Assembly: GCA_946965045.2 (NCBI GenBank)
Contig: OX337240.1
Span: 2,976,001 to 3,040,000 of the forward strand
Reading direction: 5' to 3'
From: Epithemia pelagica
Lineage: Eukaryota; Protista; Bacillariophyta
Length of the DNA: 64,000 nt
A model generated the notes under the pieces. The model was not told the origin of the DNA and ran no database searches. It was given only the letters and a program-made list of their open reading frames with translations. Shown here one piece after another: positions 23,074 through 48,323 of this stretch. Position 1 is the first letter of the stretch. Each line of letters starts with the position of its first letter. The translations under genes and the position numbers were made by a program.

Positions 23074-23419
23074 CGTCTAAGGGCAGCGTCACGCGCCCCC
23101 AAAACGCACACCCCATACGCGCCGTCGGCATGCGCCATTTTTCGTACCCGGTTTTTTTATACGGATTTACACCATTTTGACTAATCCCCCCCCACCATCA
23201 CGCACATACAACATCATACACATTCACGGCGACCCTATCTTCCACGCACGCACACTCCCATCTTCCACGCACAGAGAACTTACCTTCTAAGCACACTGAC
23301 CTTGCCCTCCACGTCCAAAACACTCTGAACACAAAGTACCAACCTCATCGGAACAAGGCATCTATACACCCTCTCCACAGGTGCAATAACACAAGGGCAA
23401 ACCCCCAATCTCTCCTATC

Positions 23420-23630
23420 CCATTCTCCAATGACACCAGCGGAAGCCACTCACCTTTTGCATCCCATGCTCCGAAAGCACCAGCGGAAGCCACACACCAT
23501 TAGCATCCCATGCTCCAAAAGCACTGGCAGAAGCCACCCACCTTTTGCATCTCAGGCACCGAAAGCACCGGCAGAAGCCACCCACCTTTTGCATCTCAGA
23601 CTCCAAAAGCACCAGCAGAAGCCACACACT
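23420..23630. repeat. Imperfect tandem repeats near the left end of the giant element
   Basis: Recurring GCACCAGCGGAAGCCAC and CACCTTTTGCATC units. Confidence 0.7.
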
Positions 23631-23714
23631 TATGGTAACTCATTTCACAACACAATCGATACCATCCACAGAAGAATGTGAAAACATGCACAGAAGCTAA
23701 TGAAGAGATACTAT

Positions 23715-26042
23715 TTAAAAAAACCAGAGTCCGTGCTTCCTCCGCTTTTTCTGCTGCGGTTGATCTTGATCAGCACTGTCCACATATCCCATCCTCTCCC
23801 GATGTTTCTTAAGAAGATTCTCCATGAACACATTTTGTCTCTGAAACAGTCCATCAACTGATACATATTCTCGATCATCCCTCACCTTCTGCTGCAATTC
23901 ATCAAGACGATCAAGGCCAATATCACTCATACCACGTCCCTTTTTGTTTGCACAACCTGAATACTTGTATTGTTCTACTCCATCTGTATCAATGTCCTCA
24001 TTAATTTGGTGCGCTTGACACCAAGCAGGGTCTTCTTTGTACAACTTTTGTTTGAACTCTTGTCTGCTCCTCAGAGCCCATGCATCCCATGAATCTTCAA
24101 GAGCCAAGAGAATGAAAGCTTCATCACTCGTAGTAAACTTACTCATCGCTTCCTTCCATATTGCTTGCTTTTGTGCTTCTGGTGTATTAGCTGTAATATC
24201 TTGATTAATGATATCTCTCACCATTCCATCTCCATAAACCGACCCCCCAAATACTTCAAACATGAAAACATAAGCATCATTGTCTCCATTCACTCCTCTC
24301 ATTTGCATCATCTCTTCAAGACTTGGCATAGGACCTAGATTTTCATCGTCAACCAATAACTTAGGGAATTGTCGCCGAACAATTCCACCACCATGTGTTC
24401 TCCATAGATTTAACGAGAAATGTTCTGCCAGGCAGGAAGGCTCAGGTTAGAGCAAAACTTTCCACAAGAATGAGAACAAGATAGCACCAAGACAGTACCA
24501 ACTTACTCATGAACCTGAACCTTAGCGATTGTAGAACATTTGATCTCTTGCGTCTGAATTCTTTCCTCAAATGGGGGGAATACCTTTCCCACCACTTTGC
24601 CTTAGCCACATCACCAATAATCTTTTCTCGTTCGAAATACGCCTTGAAGTGATCCTTCCCCAAATGCCATAATCCATTATCATCTGCATCACAATCATCG
24701 GCAAGTGAGAAATACTTCACGTACCTCCAAGCAACATCAGGCACAAAAGTCTGGAACTCATCCGTACGACAAGCTAAGGGTAGATCCTTGTATTTGCTCC
24801 TGCTCTTTCTTTGCTGTTCTCTCTTTCTTTCCCTCTTGTATTCTCTCCTTCTTTCCCTCTCACCAGACGTTGCATTAGCCCCAGAACTCTGACCATCACT
24901 AGTACCATAGATAGATGATGCAACCATTGAGCTATCGCCTCCGACTTCCATGGCTACAAGAGATGATGACGACCAAGAGAGATCAGAAAGTGAGGAAACA
25001 TCATCCATCCAGAAGTCCACATCTTTTTCGATTGTACATTTCCAAACCCACATCAACCCAGATTAGAGTTCCACTCTAACCAGTCAATACCGATAGGGCA
25101 CAAACAAAACAAAGGAAGTACACCTTACTTACAAACGCGACTGACTCCTCCGCCACCACCACCACCACCACCCATAACCTCTTCCATAATATTTTCAACA
25201 TCTTGGTGCGACATTACAGTCACACCACCATTGTCATTAGCTGCGCACTCAATATTATTTGTATCCATATGGTGATGTGTTTGCTGTGGTTGGTGAACAC
25301 CAGCGCCTCCTTGCATCAGAACGCCCCCATTGGGTGGGTATGGGACAGACATCATCTGCTGTTGTGGGTATCCTTGATGCACCATAATACCAGTTCCTTG
25401 TTGTGGATAAATCGTAGATGATGGGGCCGCCGGGAAATGATGATGTTGTTGCCCCCCAAGAGGAGCTTGGGAATAATTGAACTGTGTATGGACCTGATGT
25501 TGTTGTTGCCTTTGAGGAAGAAATGACAACACCGATGGATTTGGTTGCTGGTGAGGATAAGGATGGGTATGATTCGGATATGGAGCAACTCCATTCGCAT
25601 TATAAGGAACTCGCTGACCATGGTCGACTCCATTCATAACAGCAGTATTGTGTTCGGATTCCATAGGTGCTCCTGTATTAGTAACACCACGGGTTCCTGT
25701 ACAGCTCATGGTACTACCTTGGTCCTGGGATTCGTTGGATGAAGCTCCCCGTCCTCCTTTTTCCTGAAATATTACCTGACTCTTTTCAGATACGGATCCT
25801 GAATCCTCTTGGTTACGGTCATCATTGCTATTCTTCTTGTTGACATCTCTGATCGTTATTTCTTCGTCGTCTGTTTCATCATCGGTACTGCTTTCTCCAG
25901 CATCTTTGCCACCAGATAAACCATGGAACGCTGAATTCTTACTGTTTTGGTTGTCCTTTTTATCTTGCTTTGGATCACCACAGCGTTGGCTTCCTTGTTT
26001 TCTATTCTTGGTCCCCTGGTTTGTTTCAGAAGGGGGCGACAT
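23715..26042 (-). CDS. Transposon companion gene, multi-exon, function unknown
   Basis: In-frame GT-AG intron 24425-24506 (GTAAGT donor, CTAAC branch site) joins ORFs 24442-25056 and 23715-24356; motif TTSDEAFILLALEDSW...KYSG...GMS..GLDRLDEL; link to ORF 25125-26042 is unresolved. Confidence 0.6.
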
Positions 26043-26476
26043 GACAAAAAGAGTATACCTGATATAAGAAGTGTTGACAATGCAATGAGTTTTGGGTGCA
26101 ACAAGAGGAGAATGTTATGCCAATCCGTTTTCATTGAGGTCTTACCTTTCGACCATCAAATTTCAAAAGTCGAGCCGTTTGTTCCGAGTACACCCGGTTT
26201 TTTTTGAATTGAACCAAATCGTCAGGCGACAATTATACATTCAAACGACCAATGCCACATGGGCATTTGTGTTCGTTCCGATCCCATGTACCGATAGACT
26301 CATAGTTTATGTAGAATAGTATGGGTGGATGGGCGGGGGGGTGGGGGTAAACCATATCCATCCACAACCAATGAAAAAGCGAGCCGGGCGACCATAAAAT
26401 CGAAACCATTCGTGTCAGTCGTCACATTAGCAATGATTCTCATTCCACAAAGACTAAGGACCACAAAACCAATGCC

Positions 26477-29400
26477 ATGGGCCGTCCTTGTAAACCAAGG
26501 TATTTAAGAAATAAACCTTCCGTCATCAAAGATCAATGGGTAGGCGAAGATCCAAATGCGAGTACAGGTGGTTCCATTCTTCCATGTCGTAAATGTAGAA
26601 ATTGTCATGTATTATTCCACGTCTCCGGGATCTTCCAACATGAAAGGGTTTGTAGCACCAAAAGAGAAAACGGCACTTTGGTCTCACATGCATTGGAGCA
26701 CGAATCGTCAATGATATGCCACGAAACTGCTGGTGTCGAGAACAATACCTCTCATGATAAAGATCAGGGAAATCATTTAGAAAATGGAGGAACCGATGAT
26801 AGTGCTGTAGGGATTTCAGAAAATGGAGGAACCGACAATGGTGCTGTAGGGATTTCCTGGGCGGACGATCGAGAAGATGAGGAAAGAGAGGATCTGCAAC
26901 CCACTACACAAAAACAACCCATCGTGAGACAGCCATGTCGGAATAGTACAAATATTGCTCATTCCTTGCTGTCATCTGAGAATGAGGAAGAATCAGATGA
27001 GGACCAAGAAGAGGGACCACCAGCAGATCATGATGATGGGCTCCAACAAACTGTCGATGACAATGAGGATGTCCAAGGCAAAGGTTCATCCAGTGATGAC
27101 CATGTTATCGATGAAAACTCAAAAGACAATCCTTTGGAATTTCCAGTGTATCTTGAACAAAATGGTCTCCGATTTTCCGAAGATGACAAGGCTTTATTGA
27201 GGTTGGCCATACTCCTCCGGAATGCTGGGTGTCCAAAGTTCATGTTCGATGCCATTTTGGCATGGATTGATTATACTAACGAGTGTTGTGGCTCACGTTT
27301 TTTCAATAAAAAACATCCACGGCGAAAGGGATTCATGGCGAAATTTGAAAAAAGAGGTTTCGATTTCCCCAAACCAAAGATTGTCACCGTCCCAATGGAA
27401 GTTACAACCAAAAAGGATATAATCGTTCCAGACAGTGAGAAGTCCGTTGATACCGTTATATTTGATTTTGTGCATCAACTTCGACGTGTCTTGCAAGATC
27501 CTGAAGCCACTTCCAAGGATAAAACAATATTATGTGATGACGACCCGTATCGCCCTTATACACCGAATAAATGTCTCGAAAACATACAAGATGGCCATGT
27601 TTTCCAACGTACCGTACGGAAATACAGACATGACAACGATACTTTCGTTGTTGGTTTATTGTCTTATATGGATAAGACACACGCGAAAGGGGATGGTCGC
27701 TTTAATGCGGAACCAGTTGTTATGGTACCTTCATTTTTGACGATGTCTGAAATGCGAAAACCGAATAGACAAATCATTTTAGGGTTGATCACAGATATGG
27801 AACGGAAGTCATCTGCGGCCAAATACATCTTGGATAGGGGGTCCCCCTGTCGGAATTATCATGCACAGCTCTCGCGAATACACCAAGCTCTTTTGAAGAT
27901 ACAGAATCGAGGTGGATTGTGGATGCGATTACGGATCCATGGGATCGAGAAGGTGGTGAGATTAGTATTACCTGTGATCATGATAAAGGGAGATGCGAAG
28001 TCACAAGATAACATCGCAGGAAGATATGCATCTCATCATCAAAGTGTTGGCCGGCTTGTTTGGCAGTGTGATTGCACACCTCGGGAGTCTAGATACCCAT
28101 GGTCCACATGCAACTACCTCTTCAAAAACCCTATCCATTTCAGAAGCCTCCGTGTGCTTGGTTTAGATAAACCATCAGGAAACCCAATAGTTATCGATTC
28201 TGGACAACCCGGTATAGATGATCCGAGAGAGGATCCTTGGAGAGAACCTGTGAACAATTCCAAGAAAATTTTACATCAGATTGGACAATACCCAGTGAAC
28301 AACATCTACAACCATTTGTATTTGGGTGAGGGTGTTAATAAAACACATGGGATTTTTACCGCGGCATGTTGTGATGTATTACATACTTTGAAATCGGGGA
28401 TCATGAAATATATCATGACTGATTTCTTTGCTCTGATGACAATGAGAGAAAAAGCCATGTTTGATTTCTTGTACAGCTCTTTCTTCCGAGCCAACCGGCA
28501 GTCGGTATTCTCTTATTCTTCTAGTTGGGGGTACCCCAGAACATCCTTCTCTGCAGGTATCAGTAATGTTACAAAGGTAACAGCCAATGAATGGGTTGGT
28601 ATTATGTTTGTCTCAGCCGCTTTGTGTGTTTCTGTTCGTGGTCATCTTATTTTCGCTTCAACTATGGCGGAGAAATGGAAAAAAGTAGTTGCAGAGTGGA
28701 AACAATGGTGCAAAGAAGAAGAAGAGAGACGAAAGAAAAAGGAAGAAGAGAAAGAACGGAAGAGAAAGAAAAATGAATTAGAAAAAAAAAAGAAAAAACG
28801 ACTACGAATGGGCGCTGGACAAAACAACGTATCCTCTACCAACAATAAACGTCAACGACAATCGAAAAAAAACCCGGTTGTACACCACAGTATTGCTGAT
28901 GCTTCATCCGATTCGGATGAGAATGACTCACCTGTGGATGATAGTAACGAAGAAATAACCACAAATATCAACGACAATCTGCCCGTTCATGTACAGGAAA
29001 ATGAAGATTACCAATATTGTGAACCTGACATTGAGGTACAGGTTACGAGTGAAACAGTATTCGACGATGACCCTGTGGCATATGCATCGATCTGGGATGA
29101 AGGTGAGCGGGAACCATATCTGGATTTCCTCTTCCTGCTTGAGACAATACTCTGTTTCAACAGCTGGACAAGGATGGATAGATTTTGGGATAGCGACCCA
29201 CGTTCTCCTGCCGCGAAGGAAACAGCGCGACGATCAGTTGAATCTGTCAAGATAATGATGGATGGTATACGGCGGTATGCACCACAATTGGATAAAAAAG
29301 GGAAACTGATGTGCAATGGTTGGATGATCCCAAAATACCACAACTTGGTACATATAGTTCGACAGGTGTCCAATTTTGGCCCAGTTAAAATATCCGACAC

Positions 29401-30607
29401 TGAATCAGAGGAGAGTAACCACAAAGAAATTGTCAAACTGAATGCCAAAACAGTACAAAAGCGGGGTAAGGGTGTCTTCGACAGTCAACTTGGTGATAAC
29501 ATATGGCAGATGCAGGCATGGGATCTGCTCTGTAAAGCATCAGGGATCAAACAAGATGACGTGGAGCTACTAAAAAATGGTCAATCTCCAACCATTGTGG
29601 CAAGGAAAAAAAGAAGTCAAGTGTATCATAGTCATGAGAATGATGACGAGGACGATGAAGAAGATAGATGTAAATTCAAGGGGCGAGGGACAACAATACA
29701 AATCCAATTGGTCAGATCTGGACAGACAGAGAGCCCCGTGGTCAAGTGTACTTACAAGTATATTTCGAAAACAAATACCGGTATGATCCTCCCAAAAGTA
29801 ATCCTTGACTTCCTGGTGAAACATGCAAGTGCCATCTTCACACAAATGAATATTATACAACAGAATGACACAAGTGATTACATCATGATCCATGGGTGTA
29901 CAGAGGTCAAATTCAGGGATGAAAACATAGGTGGTATCCGATGTCATCCTAATTACCAAAGTGAGGGTCCTTGGAGAGACTGGGTGAAAGCATGGATCCC
30001 ACGACACCAGCGAACACCATTCACTGACACTGCAACAGGTAATCAGGGAACAGACAATATCTTGGTACTCTGTCAGGTTTTATGCTTCATACGCAGACCA
30101 TGGGAACAACGGGAAAGTGCTGGTCACATGCAAGAACAGGGAAATGATGCTCGTACATCAAGAATCCACCAAGAAAAACCGAGAGATGTCACACATGCTT
30201 TATTACGAACCACTTATCGTCGTAGTGACAAGGATAAAGAGAAGTCCTCCGTCCTTTTCATTCGATGGAGCAAGGCCTTTACCCGGAATTCCCGTGTTCC
30301 CGATCTTGTATTGGTTCCTATCACCAATATAGTTGAATTGGTAGGAGTGATCGATGAAAACCCGGAAATGATCCAACACCGAGATAAGGTACCGGAATAC
30401 CTGCATTCTGATGCGGAAAGAGAAATATTGCTTGAATATACTCGGAATCACAGGAACTATTCCGATATTGTATGGGAGGTACTTCCTGCCAGTAAATGGG
30501 CCAATGAGTTCAATGACTCAGCAAGTGATTCGTTGAGAGCAAGATATACATCATCATCAGATCCTTCACAAACAACAACAACAGATCGTAACACTGCTGG
30601 ATCATGA
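26477..30607 (+). CDS. Plavaka/CMC(EnSpm)-like transposase, 1376 aa
   Basis: YMDKTH, IKGDAKSQD...GRY..H...CDC, CDVLHTLKSGI, PKYHNLVH...FG...DTESEESNHK, C-terminal HP...GPWRDWV; N-terminal C2H-type finger (CRNC...HERVC). Confidence 0.8.
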   Translation: MGRPCKPRYLRNKPSVIKDQWVGEDPNASTGGSILPCRKCRNCHVLFHVSGIFQHERVCSTKRENGTLVSHALEHESSMICHETAGVENNTSHDKDQGNHLENGGTDDSAVGISENGGTDNGAVGISWADDREDEEREDLQPTTQKQPIVRQPCRNSTNIAHSLLSSENEEESDEDQEEGPPADHDDGLQQTVDDNEDVQGKGSSSDDHVIDENSKDNPLEFPVYLEQNGLRFSEDDKALLRLAILLRNAGCPKFMFDAILAWIDYTNECCGSRFFNKKHPRRKGFMAKFEKRGFDFPKPKIVTVPMEVTTKKDIIVPDSEKSVDTVIFDFVHQLRRVLQDPEATSKDKTILCDDDPYRPYTPNKCLENIQDGHVFQRTVRKYRHDNDTFVVGLLSYMDKTHAKGDGRFNAEPVVMVPSFLTMSEMRKPNRQIILGLITDMERKSSAAKYILDRGSPCRNYHAQLSRIHQALLKIQNRGGLWMRLRIHGIEKVVRLVLPVIMIKGDAKSQDNIAGRYASHHQSVGRLVWQCDCTPRESRYPWSTCNYLFKNPIHFRSLRVLGLDKPSGNPIVIDSGQPGIDDPREDPWREPVNNSKKILHQIGQYPVNNIYNHLYLGEGVNKTHGIFTAACCDVLHTLKSGIMKYIMTDFFALMTMREKAMFDFLYSSFFRANRQSVFSYSSSWGYPRTSFSAGISNVTKVTANEWVGIMFVSAALCVSVRGHLIFASTMAEKWKKVVAEWKQWCKEEEERRKKKEEEKERKRKKNELEKKKKKRLRMGAGQNNVSSTNNKRQRQSKKNPVVHHSIADASSDSDENDSPVDDSNEEITTNINDNLPVHVQENEDYQYCEPDIEVQVTSETVFDDDPVAYASIWDEGEREPYLDFLFLLETILCFNSWTRMDRFWDSDPRSPAAKETARRSVESVKIMMDGIRRYAPQLDKKGKLMCNGWMIPKYHNLVHIVRQVSNFGPVKISDTESEESNHKEIVKLNAKTVQKRGKGVFDSQLGDNIWQMQAWDLLCKASGIKQDDVELLKNGQSPTIVARKKRSQVYHSHENDDEDDEEDRCKFKGRGTTIQIQLVRSGQTESPVVKCTYKYISKTNTGMILPKVILDFLVKHASAIFTQMNIIQQNDTSDYIMIHGCTEVKFRDENIGGIRCHPNYQSEGPWRDWVKAWIPRHQRTPFTDTATGNQGTDNILVLCQVLCFIRRPWEQRESAGHMQEQGNDARTSRIHQEKPRDVTHALLRTTYRRSDKDKEKSSVLFIRWSKAFTRNSRVPDLVLVPITNIVELVGVIDENPEMIQHRDKVPEYLHSDAEREILLEYTRNHRNYSDIVWEVLPASKWANEFNDSASDSLRARYTSSSDPSQTTTTDRNTAGS

Positions 30608-31003
30608 AGGTGTCAGTGAAAGTCGTTCTGTATAACCAATAAGGGGGTGGGTGGGGGTGGGGTGGAGGGTGTGTTTCCAACCACCAACAAAGGTCATAGG
30701 GGATGTCCGAGTGGTATCCGTAATATTTATTTCAGAGAAGTGGTCCCAATAATATACTCCCCAACATGTCGGAGTGGTACTCCGTTTATTAAAAAGAGTG
30801 ACACGTGATGAGGGATAGTACGAGATAGATGTCCATGTGGTATCCACAAACGGCAGCCGACCCATTATTCTTCATAAAAAAACAAACACATCTTAGTAGA
30901 AGTCTCGTCTCTTCTTTTTCTTGAATGTGATAGGTTCATTCTGTTTGATCATCAAGTAATCATTTTTACACAAGCGGTGAGATAAAACTCTCTGGCTTAC
31001 GCA

Positions 31004-32275: not shown

Positions 32276-32281
32276 ATTAAA

Positions 32282-35200
32282 CAGACTTCGACGACCCAAA
32301 CTTCCATGGACATGGAGCAAAAACACCCTTCTATAACTTGAATCGCTCCAAATATTGGTAGAGACACTTGGGGTATCATAGGTATGGACGTCAATGGCTC
32401 TGAACTCGTGTATCACGGACCAAAAGTCTTGTTGTAGACCATACCAGTGTCACATTGTCGATGTCCCAAACTTCCATGGACATGGAGCAAAGACACCCTT
32501 CTATAACTTGAATCGCTCCAAATATTGGTAGAGACACTTGGGGTATCATAGGTATGGATGTCATAGGCTCTGAACTCGTGTATCGCGGACCAAAAGTCTT
32601 GTTGTAGACCATACCAGTGTCGCGTTGTAAATGTACCAAACTTCCATGGACATGGAGCAAAGACACCCTTCTATAACTTGAATCGCTCCAAATATTGGTA
32701 AAGACACTTGGGGTATCATAGGCATGGACGTCATAGGCTCTGAACTCGTCTATCGCGGACCAAAAGTCTTGTTGTAGACCATACCGGTCTTGCGTTGTCG
32801 ATGTCCCAAACTTCCATGGACATGGAGCAAAGACACCCTTCTATAACTTGAATCGCTCCAAATTTCGCTAGAGACACTTGGGGCATCATAGGTATGGATA
32901 TCATAGGCTCTGAACTCGTCTATCACGGACCAAAAGTCTTGTTGTAGACCATACCGGTGTTGTGTTGTCAATGTCCCAAACTTCCATGGACATGGAGCAA
33001 AGACACCCTTCTATAACTTGAATCGCTCGAAATATTGGTAGAGACACTTGGGGTATCATAGGTATGGACGTTAATGGCTCTGAACTCGTGTATCGCGGAC
33101 CAAAAGTCTTGTTGTAGACCATACCAGTGTCGCGTTGTCGATGTCCCAAACTTCCATGGACATGGAGCAAAGACACCCTTCTATAACTTGAATCGCTCCA
33201 AATATTGGTAGAGACACTTGGGGTATCATAGGCATGGACGTCATAGGCTCTGAACTCGTCTATCGCGGACCAAAAGTCTTGTTGTAGACCATACCGGTAT
33301 TGCGTTGTCGTTGTACAAAATTACCATGGACATGGAGCAAAGACACCCTTCTATAACTTGAATCACTCCAAATTTCGGTAGAGGCACTTGGTGTATCATA
33401 GCAATGGACGTCATAGACTCTGAACTCGTGTATCACAGACCAAAAGTCTTGTTGTAGACCATACCAGTGTCGCGTTGTCGATGTCCCAAACTTCCGTGGA
33501 CATGGAGCAAAGACACCCTTCTATAACTTGAATCGCTCCAAATTTCGCTAGAGACACTTGGGGCATCATAGGTATGGATATCATAGGCTCTGAACTCGTC
33601 TATCACGGACCAAAAGTCTTGTTGTAGACCATACCAGTGTCGCGTTGTCGATGTCCCAAACTTCCATGGACATGGAGCAAAGACACCCTTCTATCACTTA
33701 AATCGCTCCAAATATTGATAGAGACACTTGGGGTATCATAGGTATGGATATCATAGGCTCTGAACTCGTCTATCACGGACCAAAAGTCTTGTTGTAGACC
33801 ATATCAGTGTGGCGTTGTCGTTGTACCGAATTACCATGGACATGGAGCAAAGACACCCTTCTATAACTTGAATCACTCCAAATTTCGGTAGAGTCACTTG
33901 GTGTATCATAGCAATGGACGTCATAGGCTCTGAACGCGTGTATCGCAGACCAAAAGTCTTGTTGTAGACCATACCAGTGTCGCGTTGTCGATGTCCCAAA
34001 CTTCCGTGGACATGGAGCAAAGACACCCTTCTATCACTTAAATCGCTCCAATTATTGGTAGAGACACTTGGGGTATCATAGGCATGGATGTCATAGGCTC
34101 TGAACTCGTGTATCACAGACCAAAAGTCTTGTTATAGACCATACCGGTGTCGTGTCGTCGATGTCCCAAACTTCCATGGACATGGAGCAAAGACACCCTT
34201 CTATCACTTAAATCGCTCCAAATATTGGTAGAGACACTTGGGGTATCACAGGCATGGATATCATAGGCTCTGAACTCGTCTATCGCAGACCAACAGTCTT
34301 GTTGTAGACCATACCGGTGACGTGTTGTCGATGTCCCAAACTTCCATGGACATGGAGCAAAGACACCCTTCTATAACTTGAATCGCTCCAAATATTGGTA
34401 AAGACACTTGGGGTATCATAGGCATGGACGTCATAGGCTCTGAACTCGTCTATCGCGGACCAAAAGTCTCGTTGTAGACCATACCAGTGTAGTGTTGTCA
34501 ATGTCCCAAACTTCCATGGACATGGAGCAAAGACACCCTTCTATAACTTGAATCCCTCCAAATTTCGGTAGAGACACTTGGGGTATTATAGGAATGGACG
34601 TCATAGGCTCTGAACGCGTGTACCATGGACCAAAAGTCTTGTAGTAGACCATACTGGTGTGGTGTTGCCGTTGTACCAAACTTCCATAGACATGGAGCAA
34701 AGTCACCCTTCTATAACTTGAATCGCACCAAATTTCAATAGAGACACTTGGGGTATCATAGGAATGGATGTCATAGTCTTTGATCTCGTCTATCACGGAC
34801 CAAAAGTCTCGTTGTAGGCCATACCAGTATCGCGTTTCCGTTGTCTCAACCTTCCATGAGGGGTATGGAGCAACAACACCCTTCTATGACTTGAAGCGCT
34901 CCAAAATTCGGTACAGACACTTGCGGTATCATAGGCATGGACGTCATAGGCGCTGAACTCGTCTATCATTGACGTAAATTATTGTTGTAGACCACACCGG
35001 TGCGGTGTTGTCGTCGTCCCAATCTTCCATAGACTTTTTGGAACAAAGACATTTTTCTTTTCATCTAATCGACCCAGGTCTTGGTACATATCCTCGGGAC
35101 ATCATAGCCATGTGTACCATAGGCTCTGATCTCATGTGCCGTCAAGACAAAGGCTTGCAATAGATTAGATCGGTTTGGTGTTGTCGTCGTGCCAAAATTG

Positions 35201-35450: not shown

Positions 35451-35588
35451 ATTTTTCCCCATAAAAACGATAAGAATTGAGAGATAGTCAGGATCAGTTG
35501 TTTTCTCTGAAGTACATCTTCTTCCAACCGCAAACAGAAATCCTCATACCATTGCTCTTCAAGAAGACCGTTCGATATCGTATAAAAG

Positions 35589-36464
35589 ATGGAAGACTCG
35601 TCTTGGTTGAATACTGTTGCAATATGGAATCTCATCTCGAATACAAGATTTGATGTTGAAACTTCGTTTTGTCTTCGTAGCAGCGATAGGAATGTTGTTC
35701 TCACTGAAGATGTTGCAGCGGCAGCCGAAGGAATCAAAAACGAATTCAAGGATCTTGTAGACAAGATTATTAATCACGAGGGACGACTTGATGTGATTTC
35801 CATTATGAATGGTAATCAAGAGGGATATACAGAAGAGCACCAGTGTCAGATGGGCACATGGGCAGACAGACCGGAATTCCTTGACGGACCCTTCATCTGG
35901 AAACAAAACTTCCTCGAGACATGTCTTGTTTGCGGTAAATTCACCTGTAATCAACGGGCAACAATATACACATGCAAACATTGTTTCCGTCCTTTACAAG
36001 TACCTGGGTCGTCTTCATCTTGTGATACCACTTGTGCAAAGACTCCCTGTACTTCATCCATGAACATGTCCTTCGTATGGGAGTTCTGTATGACTTTAAG
36101 AGAGGCATTCCAAGCGTGGTTAGACTTTCACAAGTTTGGAAAAAACAGAAAGATTCCCTTTTTTGAATATATCCCAGCCGAAACTTGTGGCATCTTGACA
36201 AAAACGGTCGGTAAAGTATGGAGAGAAAAATTGGAGCCTTATTACGACGAGGATACCAAGTGGCGTAGTCCATCTCATTTCATTCACACCGAGAAACAAT
36301 GGGCATTGTGGCTGATTTCTTCACCACCTGGTTGCTCTTTTCGCAACTATATGCCTATTTTTACTGCATGTTATCACATAACACAGGAAAATCCAAAGAA
36401 ACACGCTGCTGGTGTACCACACCAGAGTGCTCGTAAGAAACAAAAGACGTGGAATGCTCCTTGA
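35589..36464 (+). CDS. Cys-rich hypothetical cargo protein 2 (paralogue of 31004-32275)
   Basis: CLVC, CKHC; WEFCMTLR and WALWLISS...FRNYM align with WRFCMIVR and WTKWLVST...FFNYM. Confidence 0.7.
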   Translation: MEDSSWLNTVAIWNLISNTRFDVETSFCLRSSDRNVVLTEDVAAAAEGIKNEFKDLVDKIINHEGRLDVISIMNGNQEGYTEEHQCQMGTWADRPEFLDGPFIWKQNFLETCLVCGKFTCNQRATIYTCKHCFRPLQVPGSSSSCDTTCAKTPCTSSMNMSFVWEFCMTLREAFQAWLDFHKFGKNRKIPFFEYIPAETCGILTKTVGKVWREKLEPYYDEDTKWRSPSHFIHTEKQWALWLISSPPGCSFRNYMPIFTACYHITQENPKKHAAGVPHQSARKKQKTWNAP

Positions 36465-36503
36465 ATTTGTTTTTCCTTGGTGATGAATGCATCCAGAAAG
36501 AAT

Positions 36504-38492
36504 TTATAATGTTCCGCTACGAATGCCTTGAACCGTTTTGGTTATACCATGATCCTCTCTTGTTTCGTTGACAGTTGCATTCATAGACCTGGAACTTACT
36601 GCCCAAAACCAACTAATAGTGTCGTTCTTCATGTTCCCATCTGTATGTTGTCTTTGTGTGTGTATTGACGTTCCATGCCGGATCACACGTCCATCCCATA
36701 GAACCGAAACCCCATGAAATAGTTGTATGCAAAGACCATGGTATGTAGTACCATCATACTCCACAAGAATATTCAGCAAAACAAAGAACCAATTTTGGGA
36801 GTCACCTGGGATTGTCTCTGTCCAGATTGCGAATGAAACAGAACCATCGTGAACATCATAGTGTGTCGTGTTCATGAGGTTCAAACTCAGGGTAATGGCT
36901 GAGGTCATACCTCCGACTCTTCCTCCGAATTCACTAGGCATTTCTTCGCCAGCTGAATCTTCTAGATACCGGAATGTTGGAATCACCCCAGGATATTCGC
37001 GTTCACAGAACCTTTTTGCCGCTGTACTTATTTTCGGCAGTATCATCGATAATGTCTTGTCCTTTGTAAATAATTTCTCGGAAACGAAAGTAGAACCGTT
37101 TCCTCTTGCCGCAGTATTACCAACAGTAGTCATAGATCCTAAGTCTCCCTTATTACATCTGGCATTGGCCGCCTTTCTCAGAGACCCAGTACGTGTAAAT
37201 TCCCTTGCTCTGTGGTGTAATAGGTCCAACAATGTCTGGTCTTTCCGTAACAGGGATGTCACTCGAATGTAACTAAGTGACTCTGGTCTCCCATCATTTC
37301 GGCGTGTCCGAACAATGAAAGTAATGTTTCCCCGAATACGATGGTCGTATACCAGTGGCCTTGGGTGTGTACCGGACGACATTTGCAACCATAGGTTTCG
37401 ATGCAAAGCACCACTAACATATCTCCGACTCCCTTTCTTATCTGAGTCATTCCTGTTTATAATCAGCCTTGTTCGATATTGTTCCCGTGACATGTGATGT
37501 GTCATCGACTGTTTATTCCCTGGCTTTTCGATCTTTCCCTTGTCATCGAGGTACACGTCAGGAGGTAAAAGTGGGCTCCCATCCTCCACATCGGACCATT
37601 GGTAACATTCCTTCACAGTTTTGTCATTATTAGTAAGATGTTCACCCCAATCTAGACTCCAACAACGATGAATTTTTTTCAAGAATGCATTACTTGCAGG
37701 TTGGCCATCTTTGTGTCGCAGACGTAACCAAGACAACGGTAGTGGGACTGATGACGATGTGATGTTGGACGACCTTGATAGTTCTTGAAATTGACGCACA
37801 CATGTATAAAAAACCCCAGCCAAAGGGAAGAGGATAATGATATCTCTGAAGAGGTGATCATTTTGGTCAAGACATAAATTTTTGTTAGTCCGAATCATCA
37901 TGACAGGATCTTCGAATATAGAGGACGACACATGTGTTGTCTTTTTCCTGATTTCTCTATATCTTGTCCTCGACAAGGTACATTCCAATATGAATGCATT
38001 GTGGATCGTTTTAGTTACAAGACCCACCGGGATTTGAGTTACAATCATAGGACAACATTCTGGTATAATGTTCGAATGACTGACAACGTCATCTCTTGTC
38101 TCCACAACATCATCCATAGCCTTGTTGTATATTTCTGGGATACGTGCAAAGACACTCGGGATATCTTTCATATCGACCTTCCGTTGTATCATCTCTTTTT
38201 CGAACGACAAACCAAAACAATCTTGATCGTCGTAACTTCCAAAGCAACGCTGCAGTAGATGCGATAGCATCCTTATTCGATCGATGTCCTTGTCCAAGAC
38301 AAAATAGCACATTCTTTCGTGTGCACTTTCGTTCCGATGCGACATGGCGACTACTGTTTCACTTATACGTTGCGTTTTCTTCTTTTCGTACTTGGCATAG
38401 GTTTCCTGTGTACATGTGAGTCTCGAAATCGTCTGATCCGATGCCATATCTTCGAAAGTGGGACGAATATGTTTCTTCTTTATGGATGTCAC
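36504..38492 (-). CDS. TET/JBP-like Fe(II)-dependent dioxygenase (putative nucleic-acid base modifier)
   Basis: C-terminal DSBH-like region: NTTHYDVHD (HxD, 36855-36863)...IQLFHGVSVLWDG...IRHGTS (distal His, 36675-36677). Confidence 0.7.
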   Translation of the reverse strand: MTSIKKKHIRPTFEDMASDQTISRLTCTQETYAKYEKKKTQRISETVVAMSHRNESAHERMCYFVLDKDIDRIRMLSHLLQRCFGSYDDQDCFGLSFEKEMIQRKVDMKDIPSVFARIPEIYNKAMDDVVETRDDVVSHSNIIPECCPMIVTQIPVGLVTKTIHNAFILECTLSRTRYREIRKKTTHVSSSIFEDPVMMIRTNKNLCLDQNDHLFRDIIILFPLAGVFYTCVRQFQELSRSSNITSSSVPLPLSWLRLRHKDGQPASNAFLKKIHRCWSLDWGEHLTNNDKTVKECYQWSDVEDGSPLLPPDVYLDDKGKIEKPGNKQSMTHHMSREQYRTRLIINRNDSDKKGSRRYVSGALHRNLWLQMSSGTHPRPLVYDHRIRGNITFIVRTRRNDGRPESLSYIRVTSLLRKDQTLLDLLHHRAREFTRTGSLRKAANARCNKGDLGSMTTVGNTAARGNGSTFVSEKLFTKDKTLSMILPKISTAAKRFCEREYPGVIPTFRYLEDSAGEEMPSEFGGRVGGMTSAITLSLNLMNTTHYDVHDGSVSFAIWTETIPGDSQNWFFVLLNILVEYDGTTYHGLCIQLFHGVSVLWDGRVIRHGTSIHTQRQHTDGNMKNDTISWFWAVSSRSMNATVNETREDHGITKTVQGIRSGTL

Positions 38493-38680
38493 CTCCGCTC
38501 TAGGATGTGTGCTTGTCGTTTCCGAACTTCTTGTAGTACAAAGACATAGTTAGTACGCGGATAGAAATGCCAAATACCTGAAACTAGAATGTCTCTTCTT
38601 TTGATCGAGAGTACTAATAATATAGATCAGACTTGCCTTTTCGCTTCTGTGTTACTGATCGTGACAGTAGAAGATTCAGT

Positions 38681-41536
38681 TCAGTCTCTCCTATTCTTCT
38701 CCTTTTGTTGTTTTTTACTCATGAAACGGAGAGTTTCCAACGGTACACGACCCCATGCTGTCTCTGGAAATACAGGGACCGGTCTGTAGAGACCACGATG
38801 TTCCTCTTTTGACACGCCAACTTCTTCAACTGAACCATCATGTGCATTGGTGTACGTAATCGAAGCAATATCTCCGTTGCACAAAGGGCAACTCTCGTTC
38901 ATTTCAGGAGGTGTCGATTTCTGTTTCCCCATAGGAACTTGTTTTTCGGTGGTAAGGACATGACCAAGACACACCCGACAAAACTTGTGCCCGCATCTCT
39001 CGATCCGACAGTCGTTAGGACGCTGTCCATGGCATATGGCACAATATTGTTCGGAGTCTTCATCATATTCGTCTAGGACGATTGTCTTGTCTTTCTTCGC
39101 GATTAATTCTGTCTCATGTAGATCGTGTGGTATTATCTCAGCATGCATATGACCGCATATGGAACAAAATCGATTCTTCACCGAATTCCGGATGAAAGTA
39201 CATGTTGGACAATGATAATGAGGACAGTTGGAGGTTTCTTGCCTTGTCCAACTCACGATAGAAGAGGTCCGACTTCTATCTAGATCCTTTTTAAGCAATG
39301 AAGTCCCACAAGTGGAACAGAGTGCCTCTTTCTGATCTTCATCGTTCAATGTTCGTACCAGATCCAAAAATCGCCGATCTTCGTGAAGTCGTTCGAGCGC
39401 CTTGTCCGCTTCTGTAATCTCTTGTATCACTTTAATGTCCTCGAATCGTTCATCGTCGGAATCCAGCATATCTTCCATTACCTCCCCTCGATCTTTCCCT
39501 TCCATTATAAACCGGCGACTGCGTTTGATCCTTGGACGATTATCGTCATTAACGTCCTTGAAACATACACGCAGAGTCGAATCACGTTTCGCTTTATTGA
39601 TAGCCGTACTCACGATATGATTGCAGGCCTTGTGACATTCTCGCCTACACGATGGCAATTCTTGAGCCCATTTCCCCATCATCTGATCACAGGACATATT
39701 AGGGGACGCCTTTGACAGGATCTCGTCGATCACACATATGATTGATACTTGGGGAAGCGTACACGCACTTGGTGCCACCGGATTCGGATACTTCTTATAA
39801 ATGAATCTCCAGTCACATCCAACGAGCTCTTCCTTTATATCAACGCTCAAGAATGATTGGATTTTCTTTTCGTCGTCCAATAGCCTTAGTTTCCGTAGAC
39901 ATCGAATCACTGTAGGCCTCCACGAGCGAATATCCCTTGTCGATAATGGATCGAATATCAACACTTCTCTTTGGTGTGCTTGTAAGAGGAATAAGACGGG
40001 ATCAAAAGCTTCATACTTGGTAGTGACGACGACCAATGTAGTATCGGAAGATGACGAACTCAAATCCATTGCAGTCGTTGTGTCCATTCTCAGACTATCT
40101 TCGTCGATTTGCTCAAAGCAAACGGACTTGTTGTGCCATTTATGAACCACCAGCACAAGCATCGACCTGAATATGAGGGGAGGGATCCCCTTAAACTCAG
40201 TCGTCTCTTGAGTATTCGTCCGTAGCAAAAGGTTTCGTCTGTACTGGCGATGTGGGACAAAAAGGACGTCCATTTTCCCATTGTCATGTTGTAGAGAACC
40301 ATTCTTGTTGGTACAGCAAGCACAGGTAAAGACAAATCGTAAAACAACTTCATGGATGCTTCCCTTACGTCTAACGGCACTTTCTTTACAGAGATCCCAA
40401 GCTTCATTGATCGCTGACATCGACTGTTTGAGGGACCAGTTAGCCATATGAATCAAACGGTCGTTAGTGAAAGATGCAAGGTCGTCTGATGGACCAGGTT
40501 TATTCTTGAGAGGAGGTGGTTTCTTTGGTATTCCTTTAGGTTTGTCGCTACCGTGGTCAACATGTGATTTACTTTCCAACAGACCCACCTTTGATTGAGA
40601 GGAAGATTTTTTTGTCGTCGCTTGTTTTCCTTTTTGTGGTTTCTTTTTCAATGCAAGAGTATCAAAAATGGAACTCCGATCCTCCTCAGTCCCTGACAGA
40701 GACTGAGATGGTGATTTGCTCTCGTTATTTGAAACAGTGAAAATGGTAGAACTTGTTGCACCATCACATCTACTGTCTGACGCTCGTTTACGGCGTTTCC
40801 TGTCTTGAGATCGTTGTTCATGTCGCCCCTTCTGATACTCCTTCGTCTTTGTAGCGTATTCCCGTTCCATTGTCTGGTAATATGAAATTAGAACCGCCAA
40901 ATTGGAATAGTCGTTCGCGGGATACTTAGCAGCTCTTGGTATGTCAAAATAAGGACGAAACCAGCAATCAGGAAGTGTAAGGGCTAATGCTTTTTCAACA
41001 TCGACTCCTTCCATTTCATAGGAGTCAGATTCCAATACCCGATAGACAGCTGCCATATGTTGAACGCTCCAAACCATTTCTCGGACTGCTATTGTTCTGT
41101 CTTTCCAAAACTTCGATCTATCAGACGTCATGTAGTCCAATATTTTTGCAGCCACGACATTAAGCCGTCTCTCCATCGAATACGAGTTGAGGACAATATC
41201 AGCGAGCATAGGATGGGCTCCAAGAAACACCTTGAGGGATCGAGTAAAGCTTGCGCTCGACTTTGATCTTGTCGTTGACGGGAATTCCTTGTCCCACAGA
41301 CGAAGTGCGTCTCCATATAGAGTTTGTTCGAATAGGTCGATTTCTGGTGAAATAAAACTACCAGCTCCGTCACTCTTGTTTCCCTCTTGTTGTTCTTCAA
41401 TCGTCTCTACAAGTCTCAGTATCTTCGGGAAACAAACAGCAGCATGCGAGGCGATATCACTGAAAATACTTGATCCACAGCGCAAGAGGGATACGAATAT
41501 GGTTTCACCTCTTATGTAGTGGAGAAATCTGTCCAA
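38681..41536 (-). CDS. Large cargo protein with two C-terminal RING-like fingers
   Basis: CSTC...CPHYHCPTC...CSICG and CAIC...CGHKFCRVC...CPLC; basic/Ser-rich linker. Confidence 0.75.
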   Translation of the reverse strand: MDRFLHYIRGETIFVSLLRCGSSIFSDIASHAAVCFPKILRLVETIEEQQEGNKSDGAGSFISPEIDLFEQTLYGDALRLWDKEFPSTTRSKSSASFTRSLKVFLGAHPMLADIVLNSYSMERRLNVVAAKILDYMTSDRSKFWKDRTIAVREMVWSVQHMAAVYRVLESDSYEMEGVDVEKALALTLPDCWFRPYFDIPRAAKYPANDYSNLAVLISYYQTMEREYATKTKEYQKGRHEQRSQDRKRRKRASDSRCDGATSSTIFTVSNNESKSPSQSLSGTEEDRSSIFDTLALKKKPQKGKQATTKKSSSQSKVGLLESKSHVDHGSDKPKGIPKKPPPLKNKPGPSDDLASFTNDRLIHMANWSLKQSMSAINEAWDLCKESAVRRKGSIHEVVLRFVFTCACCTNKNGSLQHDNGKMDVLFVPHRQYRRNLLLRTNTQETTEFKGIPPLIFRSMLVLVVHKWHNKSVCFEQIDEDSLRMDTTTAMDLSSSSSDTTLVVVTTKYEAFDPVLFLLQAHQREVLIFDPLSTRDIRSWRPTVIRCLRKLRLLDDEKKIQSFLSVDIKEELVGCDWRFIYKKYPNPVAPSACTLPQVSIICVIDEILSKASPNMSCDQMMGKWAQELPSCRRECHKACNHIVSTAINKAKRDSTLRVCFKDVNDDNRPRIKRSRRFIMEGKDRGEVMEDMLDSDDERFEDIKVIQEITEADKALERLHEDRRFLDLVRTLNDEDQKEALCSTCGTSLLKKDLDRSRTSSIVSWTRQETSNCPHYHCPTCTFIRNSVKNRFCSICGHMHAEIIPHDLHETELIAKKDKTIVLDEYDEDSEQYCAICHGQRPNDCRIERCGHKFCRVCLGHVLTTEKQVPMGKQKSTPPEMNESCPLCNGDIASITYTNAHDGSVEEVGVSKEEHRGLYRPVPVFPETAWGRVPLETLRFMSKKQQKEKNRRD

Positions 41537-41759
41537 TTATCAGTGTTGGAATAAACAGAACGATACCACTCGATTGTATATTCATAACATATCAAGTCTG
41601 GGAAATATCGATCGGAATCTTCTACCGAATCAGCCATATTAACGTGCGATTCAATCAGCTTGAGGAAGAAACGAGGAGAAATTTTCTTTCGATGCAGGGT
41701 TCCGATGCAACTTGATACTACCGTTTCTCAAGCTTGCGTGATGGAAACCCTGGAGGGTC

Positions 41760-43170
41760 TTGGTCGATAGGGATGGAGGAGTGAGGGATATGGGTGTACC
41801 AACTTGATGTCTCGGTCCTTCCAGTCAAGAATCAGTAGCAAATACAACAATCCAATAGGGTCTTGGTCGATAGAGATAGAAGATAGAAGTATGGGGGCAC
41901 AACAACTTGGTGTCTCGGCCCTTCAACAGAACCACCAATCAAGATATAGCAATCCAATGGGGTCTTCTTGGTCGATGTAGATGAAGGAGGGATGGAGAGG
42001 GGTGCACCAACTTGGTGTCTCGGCCCTTGTTCCAATAGGGAAGGAGTAGCAACACAGCAATCCAACAAGGTCTTGGTCGATGGTGATGGAGGAGTGAAAA
42101 TTGGGTGCACCAACTTGGTGTCTTGATCCTTGTTCCAATCGAGAAGGAGTAGCAACACAGCAATCCAACAGGGTCTTGGTCGATGGAAATGGAGGGGTGA
42201 AGGAAATGGGTGCACCAACTTGGTGTCTCGGCCCTTATTTCAATCGGGAAGGAGTAGTAACACGGCAATCCAACACGGTCTTGGTCGATGGAGATGGAGG
42301 GGTGAAGGAAATGGGTGCACCAACTTGGTGTCTCAGCCCTTGTTCCAATCGGGAAGGAGTAGCAACACGGCAATCCAACACGGTCTTGGTCGATGGAGAT
42401 GGAGGGGTGAAGGAAATGGGTGCACCAACTTGGTGTCTCAGCCCTTGTTCCAATCGGGAAGGAGTAGCAACACAGCAATCCAACGGGGTCTTGGTCGATG
42501 GAAATGGAGGGGTGAAGGAAATGGGTGCACCAACTTGGTGTCTCAGCCCTTGTTCCAATCAAGAAGGAGTAGCAACACAGCAATCCAACGGGGTCTTGGT
42601 CGATGGAAATGGAGGGGTGAAGGAAATGGGTGCACCAACTTGGTGTCTCAGCCCTTGTTCCAATCGGGAAGGAGTAGCAACACAGCAATCCAATAGGGTC
42701 TTGGTTGATGGAAATGGAGGGGTGAGGGAAATGGGTGCACCAACTTGGTGTCTCGGCCCTTGTTCCAATTGAGAAGGAGTAGCAACACAGCAATCCAACA
42801 GGGTCTTGGTCGATGGAGATGGAGGGGTGAAGGAAGAGGGTGCACCAACTTGGTGTCTCAGCCCTTGTTCCAATCGGGAATGAGTAGCAACACAGCAATC
42901 CAACAGGGTCTTGGTTGATGGAAATGGAGGGGTGAAGGAAATGGGTGCACCAACTTGGTGTCTTGGCCCTTGTTCCAATCAAGAAGGAGTAGCAACACAG
43001 CAATCCAACAGGGTCTTGGTCGATGGAAATGGAGGGGTGAAGGAAATGGGTGCACCAACTTGGTGTCTCAGCCCTTGTTCCAATCAAGAAGGAGTAGCAA
43101 CACAGCAATCCAACGGGGTCTTGGTCGATGGAAATGGAGGGGTGAAGGAAATGGGTGCACCAACTTGGTG
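41760..43170. repeat. 105-bp tandem array, about 14 units
   Basis: TGCACCAACTTGGTGTCT recurs at 42211, 42316, 42421 ... 43156; degenerate units from about 41790. Confidence 0.97.
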
Positions 43171-43172
43171 TC

Positions 43173-43908
43173 TTTTGCCCTTTGTTCAATAGAATCCTCA
43201 CCAATCCGACCGTTCAGATCGTTGAAAATGGTCTTCTGGGATAATAGGAGGGAAGAAGCAGCGGCAATCCAGCAATCCAACCAGTTTTGGTCGATGGAAA
43301 TTGATGGGAGAATGAAATGGGTGCACCAACTTGGTGTCTTCGCCCTTTTTCAAACAGAACCACCAATCCAGTCGTTCAGAGCGTTGAAAATTGTCTTGTG
43401 GGATGATAGGAGGGAAGAAATAGTTGCCAAACAGCGATCACATGGTTGGGTTTTCATGGAAACAGAAGAAAATGATTAGTGGGCATATAGGAAAACGACA
43501 AAACGAACTCTCACTGTTGTCTTGTCGACTTGGCTTACCTTTTTGCCCTTTGTTCAATAGAATCCTCACCAATCCGACCGTTCAGATCGTTGAAAATGGT
43601 CTTCTGGGATAATAGGAGGGAAGAAGCAGCGGCAATCCAGCAATCCAACCAGTTTTGGTCGATGGAAATTGATGGGAGAATGAAATGGGTGCACCAACTT
43701 GGTGTCTTCGCCCTTTTTCAAACAGAACCACCAATCCAGTCGTTCAGAGCGTTGAAAATTGTCTTGTGGGATGATAGGAGGGAAGAAATAGTTGCCAAAC
43801 AGCGATCACATGGTTGGGTTTTCATGGAAACAGAAGAAAATGATTAGTGGGCATATAGGAAAACGACAAAACGAACTCTCACTGTTGTCTTGTCGACTTG
43901 GCTTACCT
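43173..43908. repeat. Exact 368-bp tandem duplication
   Basis: 43173-43540 matches 43541-43908 by eye. Confidence 0.9.
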
Positions 43909-43964
43909 AGCACCTTTCCAATTTGAAAAAGGAAATGATTCTCTTTGTGTTCGCCTGTTTGTTG

Positions 43965-44030
43965 TAGCTGTTGTTGTTGTTGTTGCTGTTGTGTTGTTGT
44001 TGTTGTTGTTGTTGTTGTTGCTGCTGCTGT
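43965..44030. repeat. (GTT)n/(GCT)n microsatellite
   Basis: Runs of TGT/TGC triplets. Confidence 0.9.
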
Positions 44031-44328
44031 GTGTTTTTTGGGGCGTTGGGGGTTGGTGTGAGTTGGATGAGGCACTCTATGACACTATCGTCAAAAAGTG
44101 ATCACAAAAGTGGGAGAGTATATCTTTTGTGTGGTTGTTGTGTGAGGAAAATCTAATTTTCAGCGTTCTTCTGTGATTTTGTGTCCATTGTTCTTCGTAT
44201 GTCACTGTGACGTGATTTGGTGGTGGAGGAGAAATTTGTGGGTCGCTTTTGGAGTTTACGTGCGACTGGAATACTAGGTGTTATATGTGTAGCTAGTAGC
44301 TAGGTATCTAGGCAAAGGTTAGGCTCTG

Positions 44329-44512
44329 TGCACGCGATTCCACATACAATAAACATGCTCACGCGGGTGTCAACACGTTTCACGCGTTGTCTACACGTTT
44401 CACGCGCATTCACGCGCAATCTGGAGCGCCACGCGCTTCGTACGCGCCAAATGCGCGTGATCCGTGTTCTGGGGGTGCTGCACGCGCCTATTGGGCGTGT
44501 GTCACGCGCCTG
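44329..44512. repeat. Subterminal CACGCG motif cluster of the giant element
   Basis: About 9 CACGCG/CGCGTG motifs in about 180 bp; also TCACGCGCC at about 23089 near the left TIR. Confidence 0.8.
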
Positions 44513-44559
44513 TTGGTGGAATTCCAGTCACTTATCTTCAAAAAACCTCCTTAGACGTA

Positions 44560-48266: not shown

Positions 48267-48323
48267 GTCATCGGAACGAACAAGTGCACCAACCCTGGCC
48301 GTTCGAAGTGATAAGGCATGGCC

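Follow-up and report, generated by a model that had tools for sequence, protein, structure and literature searches.

Within a 64,000-nucleotide window of the Epithemia pelagica genome (contig OX337240.1, positions 2,976,001 to 3,040,000 of the forward strand, assembly GCA_946965045.2; positions below count from the first letter of the window), a 21.5-kb block interrupts the pol gene of a copia long terminal repeat (LTR) retrotransposon. We find that this block is very probably a giant Plavaka-lineage DNA transposon, near-intact and recently mobile: a cut-and-paste element with a DDE transposase of the CMC/CMCT group that resides in a diatom and carries a TET/JBP-fold enzyme as cargo. An earlier note, made from the letters of the window, had described it as a Plavaka/CMC-like cargo transposon with exact ends. 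Its account of the ends, of insertion as a unit and of the cargo enzyme stood up in our analysis, and its account of the target-site duplication (TSD), the gene layout and the RING protein had to be amended.

Ends of the element and the rejoined host gene

The terminal inverted repeats (TIRs) read CGTCTAAGG at the left and, on the plus strand, CCTTAGACG at the right; the inverted match covers 9 bp and does not extend further inward. With TA on either side, the length between the flanks is 21,484 bp (23074–44557), and both boundaries that had been proposed for the element could be located exactly. The 11-mer that includes the TA, TACGTCTAAGG, occurs three times in the window when up to one mismatch is allowed, against 0.38 occurrences expected, and its two exact matches are the two element ends. 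Deleting the block together with one TA restores a single continuous minus-strand copia pol frame (...AEFYGDVNEAIPPKMPQPRGK...), as the earlier note had stated, and a diverged copia paralogue at 21042–21938 aligns without gaps over the rejoined junction. The host copia has an in-frame stop near 44580, at a Trp position of the paralogue five codons upstream of the junction, and hence this copia copy is slightly damaged.

Three complete copies of the element are flanked by TA/TA (the window), TA/TA (contig ctg1362l) and AA/AA (contig ctg1180l), while unpaired ends on other contigs are flanked by CG, CA and TG. Because the flanks vary between copies, the TSD is 2 bp without fixed sequence and the TIR is truly 9 bp. 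The proposed TA duplication therefore holds in part: TA is present on both sides of this copy, but the element shows no preference for TA and duplicates 2 bp of any sequence (AA on ctg1180l; TG in a relative described below). Insertion specific to TA, or an 11-bp repeat without any duplication, was also considered and is ruled out by the AA, CG, CA and TG flanks elsewhere.

Copies in the genome and age of the insertion

Copies were searched in the ENA assembly ERZ21939226, where the transposase retrieved a 99% identical protein on another contig. The second copy, on ctg1362l, spans 22,097 bp; its similarity to the window runs exactly from 23072 through 44559 with all genes in the same order, and the DNA that flanks it is unrelated to that of the window. 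A third copy, on ctg1180l, measures about 24.2 kb. Proteins at least 90% identical to those of the element occur on about 20 contigs, and three transposase open reading frames (ORFs) of 1,376 aa were found among the matches listed. Coding identity among copies is 98.4–99.7%, and the main difference between them is the length of the tandem arrays. At least three complete copies with common ends and gene order support the proposal that the element inserted as one unit, and the genome-wide check for copies that share its ends likewise found identical ends and gene order on other contigs.

These copies also bear on whether the block might have been misassembled or be a stack of elements that inserted one by one. 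Its size and long tandem arrays could raise that suspicion, and nothing more does; the same ends and gene order recur on several contigs at 98–99.7% coding identity, in different flanks and with matching 2-bp TSDs, and excision restores the host reading frame, which makes such an origin extremely improbable. What does count against a fully functional transposon is that each copy examined has at least one disrupted gene, the RING gene in the window and the transposase or dioxygenase elsewhere. Some of these breaks could come from assembly indels.

The neighbouring RabGAP-TBC gene (7869–10745) is matched at 98% identity on ctg1362l, which runs parallel to window 4775–22255 at about 97.7% identity and then passes directly to window 50828 onward; the other haplotype (L006) lacks the entire stretch 22256–50827, which comprises the 7.1-kb host copia and the element nested in it. 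The two LTRs of the host copia are identical (143/143). Because the other haplotype lacks both the copia and the nested element, and because the copia LTRs are identical, the insertion is recent, and the order of events follows: the haplotypes diverged, the copia inserted, and the 21.5-kb element then inserted into the copia. The host copia is a very recent, polymorphic insertion in its own right. Named homologues of the RabGAP gene all belong to diatoms (Epithemia, Entomoneis, Cyclotella, Thalassiosira, Cylindrotheca, Seminavis, Mayamaea and Amphora), in agreement with the diatom host suggested earlier.

Assignment of the transposase

The transposase ORF is intact, and its placement in the Plavaka lineage comes through its relatives. 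It is homologous over more than 900 residues to the protein P0003 (BLASTP E 6e-36), which in turn matches the Pfam Plavaka model PF18759 with 47.7 bits against a cutoff of 26.3, and it matches the PF18759-positive transposase of a JGI metagenome contig, L008 (tblastn E 2e-46). In an alignment with seven diverged relatives (20–52% identity), the putative catalytic triad D399, D506 and E979 is invariant, as are H955-x3-H959 and a C-terminal R-x-HP motif, and the C(2)C motif is canonical in five of the seven. The CMC/Transib group is characterised by C(2)C in combination with H(3-4)H (PMC12730594). Furthermore, the 2-bp TSD seen in three copies and in the L001 relative agrees with the 2 bp or 2–3 bp reported for Plavaka (PMC12730594). 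The transitive homology, DDE triad and 2-bp TSD support the call of a Plavaka/CMC-like transposase. We base the placement on similarity, pairwise and by profile, and not on a tree that includes curated references.

Several features speak against this assignment. The profile search that the earlier note had proposed gave no direct match: the window transposase does not hit PF18759, whole or in pieces, at E values up to 10, and the connection runs instead through Pfam-positive homologues, to which it is only 20–26% identical. The window family also lacks the first Cys of C(2)C and has C531-x-C533 in its place. Its termini, CGTCT..AGACG, are unlike the fungal Plavaka CA..TG type; Plavaka termini are TGT..ACA in PlavakaA and CATCA..TGATG in PlavakaB, with CA..TG in most CMCT elements (PMC12730594). 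The transposase could accordingly represent a sister lineage of Plavaka within CMC/CMCT, distinct from it and not yet described. We regard this as unlikely, given an unbroken chain of significant similarity to Pfam-positive Plavaka proteins that includes the C-terminal R-x-HPNY region, the 2-bp TSD, and the termini of the L001 relative (CATCT..AGATG), which differ from PlavakaB CATCA by one base.

Other approaches to the transposase gave little. A homologue search returned only unnamed environmental proteins, a PDB sequence search nothing meaningful, and an AlphaFold2 model of the core (7-sequence alignment) was of low confidence and was not used (predicted local distance difference test, pLDDT, 46; predicted TM-score, pTM, 0.30).

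A TET/JBP-fold cargo enzyme

To place the cargo enzyme we relied on structure. An AlphaFold2 model of the protein, built from a 61-sequence alignment, reached a pLDDT of 81.7 and a pTM of 0.84. In a Foldseek comparison with the PDB, ranks 1–25 were all TET2, CMD1, CcTet or NgTET1 (E 1e-10 to 7e-6; CMD1 at 2e-9), and FTO and AlkB came later. The best named matches in a viral library were JBP1/TET oxygenases. The fold of this confident model, the structural matches led by TET enzymes and the JBP1/TET viral matches together bear out the TET/JBP-like cargo enzyme of the earlier note. Relatives are numerous, with 567 at E ≤ 0.001 among 1.8 billion cluster representatives; those that were looked up are environmental and listed only as 'hypothetical protein', with no named cellular homologue.

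Residues of the predicted active site are strongly conserved in this family. H544 and D546, the HxD of the iron triad, are invariant (61/61), and the distal His, H606, is present in 58 of 59. D549 (59/61) lies three residues after HxD, at the position of the Asp with which CMD1 reads cytosine N4, and R445 (59/61) lies 99 residues upstream of H544, at the spacing of CMD1 R244 and TET2 R1261; both equivalences are drawn from spacing. In CMD1 the N4 reader is D350, and R244 is the counterpart of TET2 R1261 (PMC7854593). Position 629 is aromatic (F, W or Y) in 52 of 59, in the place where the R-x5-aromatic motif has its base-stacking residue. Some 250 residues at the N-terminus are also conserved, and this region has no assignment. 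We also considered the PE type of fungal transposons, which is ruled out by the invariant HxD (D546) as opposed to the PE hallmark HxE. In the reading that we favour, the enzyme would act on modified DNA bases, most likely 5-methylcytosine (5mC).

Two sets of results detract from this identification. First, the protein has no Pfam match, and Tet_JBP (PF12851) is missed even at E values up to 10; a Pfam scan of 60 homologues along with the window protein found no family at all, and neither the sequence nor the family profile matched any solved TET among PDB sequences. Second, at position 623, assigned by motif spacing, 43 of 59 members have Asn in place of the Arg with which canonical TETs bind 2-oxoglutarate (2OG), and residues 607–640, after the distal His, contain no conserved Arg in 59 family members. 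Because Asn replaces this Arg, ordinary 2OG-dependent chemistry is not assured.

The element could thus be just as we describe it and its dioxygenase still not be a simple 2OG-dependent 5mC oxidiser: its co-substrate or its product might be a different one, as in the algal TET homologue CMD1, which employs vitamin C, or its target might be thymine, N6-methyladenine (6mA) or RNA. In addition to the Asn at the presumed place of the Arg for the 2OG C5-carboxylate, CMD1 is among the best structural matches, and CMD1 is unable to use 2OG since it does not deploy this Arg (PMC7854593); 6mA is a further substrate of CcTet, and thymine is one of NgTET1. Against this, the Asn was assigned from spacing (N623-x5-F629) and not from structural superposition, other conserved basic residues (R602, R605, K/R590) might bind 2OG, and the Asp of HxDxxD that reads cytosine N4 in CMD1 is retained, which favours a cytosine substrate. 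On balance we consider such altered chemistry rather unlikely. A bolder version, which we offer as a doubtful speculation, is that a large TET-like clade unseen by profiles has exchanged Arg for Asn, uses a different co-substrate in the manner of CMD1 and writes a non-canonical base, with which giant Plavaka elements of marine protists, together with the RING ligase, mark or protect their own DNA.

The environmental relatives of the dioxygenase also include far longer fusions (P0106 and P0188–P0191, about 1,720–1,756 aa; P0080, 1,228 aa), in which the TET-like domain is C-terminal or in the middle.

Selection on the cargo and its linkage to the transposase

We compared coding sequences between copies to determine the ratio of nonsynonymous to synonymous divergence (dN/dS) for each gene. 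The dioxygenase gave 0.09–0.13, Cys-2 0.13–0.14, the transposase 0.17–0.24, Cys-1 0–0.30 and the RING gene 0.26–0.37. Segments 2 and 3 of the companion gene gave 0–0.26 (not computable where dS = 0), and its low-complexity segment 1 gave about 1.5. By these values the dioxygenase, whose ratio of about 0.1 we rank lowest among the genes of the element, is under purifying selection.

The cargo was found with the transposase in all copies examined, and in unrelated metagenome contigs Plavaka-like transposases accompany relatives of the dioxygenase, so the earlier proposal that the two travel together is supported. A metagenome scan with a 14-sequence dioxygenase alignment returned 11 short contigs. 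In five environmental contigs (L007, L008, L019, L021 and L022), a dioxygenase relative is convergent to a Plavaka-like transposase in the same orientation as in the window, with 22–30% protein identity for the pair. Because the pair recurs in this way, the partnership between dioxygenase and transposase is old and widespread. The other cargo genes were seen only in the genome of the window.

The same genome also holds a sister element and a more diverged module. The first (L001:6896-19657) is 12,762 bp long, has the ends CATCTAAGG..CCTTAGATG and the flanks TG/TG, and encodes a transposase 57% identical to that of the window. It contains the companion gene, Cys-1, Cys-2 and a RING-like N-terminus, and comparison with the window element revealed neither a dioxygenase gene nor a 170-bp array. 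The second (L004:5050-12862) presents RING ORFs, then a dioxygenase 47% identical to that of the window, a copia insertion and the Cys genes, and so keeps the order RING, dioxygenase, Cys genes. The 953-aa protein called in L004 seems to continue beyond the dioxygenase domain.

Two considerations temper a role for the cargo. The pairs compared for dN/dS have ancestry in common and so are not independent, although their direction is consistent; and the L001 relative has intact ends and a TSD without a dioxygenase gene. Since L001 transposes without one, the dioxygenase is not required for mobility, and L001 offers a natural 'minus-TET' comparator. In the ctg1299l copy, moreover, the dioxygenase is broken and the transposase intact. 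The dioxygenase and the other extra genes might then be passive passengers, host genes captured without any role for the element. We hold this to be very unlikely in view of the dioxygenase dN/dS of about 0.1, the recurrence of the gene pair at 22–30% identity in the five environmental contigs, and the failure to find a named cellular homologue.

Accessory genes, repeats and subterminal motifs

The order of genes and repeats is as the earlier note had it (Table 1), with corrections: the companion gene consists of three ORF segments, and the RING gene starts at 41637 and is frameshifted here. The three-part structure of the companion gene is also found in three other copies (L002, L012 and L013) and in the diverged L001 element, which favours introns over decay, and the segments are probably three exons, with many in-frame GT-AG joins possible. 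The companion gene has no Pfam or PDB sequence match. Cys-1 has a 41% identical homologue in L001, no Pfam hit and no meaningful PDB sequence match.

Table 1. Features of the transposon and its host retrotransposon, in window coordinates
Feature	Positions	Strand	Basis
Host copia LTR retrotransposon, 3' part: end of pol, LTR about 22255-22397	22256..23071	-	Rejoined site, haplotype comparison
Left TSD copy (TA)	23072..23073	.	Printed sequence and rejoined site; other copies TA/TA, AA/AA
Left TIR, CGTCTAAGG	23074..23082	+	Exact match; homology with second copy from 23072; 20-nt end also in L002, L012, L013
Left subterminal region, motifs CACGCGCC / ACGCGCC / ATGCGCC	23083..23140	.	Motif search
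44-bp tandem repeat, 4.8 copies	23417..23629	.	Repeat search
Companion gene, ORF segments 25125-26042, 24442-25056, 23715-24356	23715..26042	-	ORF list
DDE transposase, probable Plavaka lineage, 1,376 aa, intact ORF	26477..30607	+	Homology to Pfam-positive relatives, DDE triad
Cys-rich protein 1 (Cys-1), 423 aa	31004..32275	+	Cys-2 paralogue, BLASTP E 2e-12
170-bp tandem array, 16.1 copies	32288..35034	.	Repeat search
Cys-rich protein 2 (Cys-2), 291 aa	35589..36464	+	ORF; Cys-1 paralogue
TET/JBP-fold Fe(II) dioxygenase, 647 aa from ATG; ORF to 38492 (GTG start, 662 aa)	36504..38447	-	AlphaFold2 model and Foldseek
RING-finger protein gene, ATG 41637, frameshift near 41512, 951-aa ORF downstream of frameshift	38681..41637	-	Copy comparison
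105-bp tandem array (also scored 210/315 bp), 13.6 copies	41754..43173	.	Repeat search
Exact 368-bp tandem duplication, 100% matches	43173..43908	.	Repeat search
Right subterminal cluster, about 10 (T)CACGCG(C) motifs	44340..44510	.	Motif positions
Right TIR, plus strand CCTTAGACG	44549..44557	-	Exact match; right end also in L003, L009, L010, L011
Right TSD copy (TA)	44558..44559	.	Printed sequence and rejoined site
Host copia LTR retrotransposon, 5' part: pol/gag, LTR 50685-50827	44560..50827	-	LTR and haplotype comparison

The RING ORF is intact in copies L009 and L010 (1,003–1,007 aa), and in the window copy it is frameshifted after about codon 41. A RING-type finger at residues 818–891 scores below Pfam cutoffs and matches PDB RING E3s weakly (E 0.04), while a second Cys/His cluster upstream of the finger has no match to RING models. 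Of the 'double-RING' protein in the earlier description, one cluster thus finds weak support and the other does not. In a Pfam scan of all eight element ORFs and their sub-domains, weak RING matches were the only result, and an Rfam search gave no match in the window.

The 170-bp array is longer in the ctg1362l copy, and short palindromes lie inside its unit. The period of the 105-bp array (41754–43204) is divisible by three, and several frames are open, among them a 421-aa minus-strand ORF; in copy L010, a 420-aa gene is called at the corresponding position. The 368-bp duplication is presumably very recent and specific to the window copy or its lineage.

CACGCG-type motifs are concentrated at both ends of the element, with about 10 in its last 220 bp and 3–4 in its first 60 bp, and of the GCGCG/CGCGC pentamers in the whole 21.5 kb a single one falls outside the two subterminal regions. 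L001 has analogous TGCGCA repeats near both ends, the left of which is a 20-bp × 4.4 repeat with a TGCGCA core. We take the subterminal motifs to be candidate protein-binding sites, which may also be CpG methylation targets.

Proposed mechanism

We envisage that the transposase recognises the inverted ends and the CACGCG-type repeats next to them. Its N-terminal C-x2-C...H zinc finger would make this contact, perhaps with help from the companion or Cys-rich proteins, and the transposase would then excise the whole 21.5 kb and reinsert it with a 2-bp stagger. The dioxygenase would oxidise or otherwise modify 5mC on element DNA, the RING-finger protein may serve as a ubiquitin-ligase-like partner, and both long tandem arrays could act as platforms for binding. 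Diatom methylation is found mainly on transposons (PMC12344493). Modification of 5mC would offset CpG methylation, which in diatoms is aimed at transposons, so that the element stays expressible. We infer this anti-silencing role, through 5mC oxidation; the same role has been proposed for TET-carrying transposons of fungi (PMC12730594).

Genomic neighbourhood

Other features of the window surround the insertion. A Ty3/gypsy retrotransposon at 13986–19536, with 203-bp LTRs (13986–14188 and 19334–19536) and a reverse transcriptase/RNase H ORF (16761–17876), is present in both haplotypes. A copia pol fragment at 20605–21938 (plus strand) is split by a frameshift here and intact as a 458-aa ORF in the other haplotype (L006:2203-3579). 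The haplotypes are about 97.7% identical to the left of the insertion and about 90–92% identical to its right (52784–63104 versus L006), where there is a local inverted duplicate at 57979–58592. HMG-box protein genes flank the region at 2944–4371 (plus strand) and 61725–62900 (minus strand).

Comparison with known systems

The closest described system is PlavakaB, a TET-carrying Plavaka with defined ends in the fungi Agaricus bisporus and Gymnopus confluens (Kojima 2025, PMC12730594); an earlier link between TET/JBP genes and Plavaka in fungi is credited there to Iyer et al. 2014. Both the fungal and the diatom elements have a Plavaka-lineage DDE transposase with H(3-4)H, a 2-bp (or 2–3-bp) TSD and short inverted ends, and both enclose a TET/JBP-fold dioxygenase that is detectable by structure and not by sequence profile. 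The fungal enzymes are, however, of the PE type with HxE, whereas the diatom family has HxD, and the termini are CATCA..TGATG in PlavakaB and CGTCT..AGACG here (PMC12730594). The window element differs further in its diatom host, its 21.5-kb size, its four further genes and its two kilobase-scale tandem arrays.

Giant Plavaka elements with accessory genes have also been described in the red algae Bostrychia and Chondrus (bioRxiv 10.1101/2025.02.11.637652). These fall in a 17–19-kb class and, as here, carry several accessory genes that include a putative 2OG-type oxygenase, have tandem arrays that adjoin the accessory genes, and have been proposed to act by anti-silencing or self-modification. 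Their cargo is PAG1, PAG2 (DNA methylase and SET) and PAG3 (ParB-like and oxygenase), and the diatom cassette is different: models for methylase (PF01555), SET (PF00856) and ParB had no match in the eight element ORFs. The best match of PAG3 is a phytanoyl-CoA-type dioxygenase with a weak E value, whereas the diatom oxygenase is clearly closest to TET; the two are set apart here by description.

With the solved enzymes human TET2, Chlamydomonas CMD1, Coprinopsis CcTet and Naegleria NgTET1, the diatom dioxygenase has in common the HxD...H triad and the aromatic of the last core strand; an Asp three residues after HxD and an Arg about 100 residues upstream lie at compatible spacings (PMC7854593). 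It differs from them in lacking detectable sequence similarity, in having Asn instead of the Arg of R-x5-aromatic, and in its conserved N-terminal region.

CACTA elements end in CACTA and make 3-bp TSDs. Like the diatom element, EnSpm/CACTA elements combine a DDE transposase of the CMC type with a second gene, have short repeats clustered near their ends and make a short TSD, while their second protein, TnpA, is not known to resemble the companion gene (general knowledge and PMC12730594). VANDAL (Mutator) elements with VANC encode a factor that lowers methylation of their own copies (bioRxiv 10.1101/2025.02.11.637652), which resembles the role proposed here for the dioxygenase. This is an analogy only, because the transposase superfamily is unrelated and VANC is an unrelated protein and not an enzyme of the TET fold.

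In the literature on Plavaka, no diatom paper appeared among the 16 listed of 20 matches, and a search for diatom JBP transposons returned three papers without a title on the subject. Diatoms are major marine primary producers that methylate mainly transposons, and the capacity to move over 20 kb by cut-and-paste makes the element attractive for diatom genetics. Exact ends, about 20 contigs with family proteins, near-identical coding sequence in the copies compared, a haplotype-specific insertion and a dioxygenase-less relative make relief of methylation silencing by a TET-like enzyme directly testable. The element also brings to light a large TET-fold family that is unseen by Pfam and has an unusual cofactor pocket. 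We judge it to be of a known kind and new in its host lineage, in its distinct, profile-invisible TET-like clade with an altered cofactor motif, in its termini and in its larger and different cargo; it extends to diatoms the transposon strategy, known from fungi and recently from red algae, of carrying an epigenetic modifier of its own.

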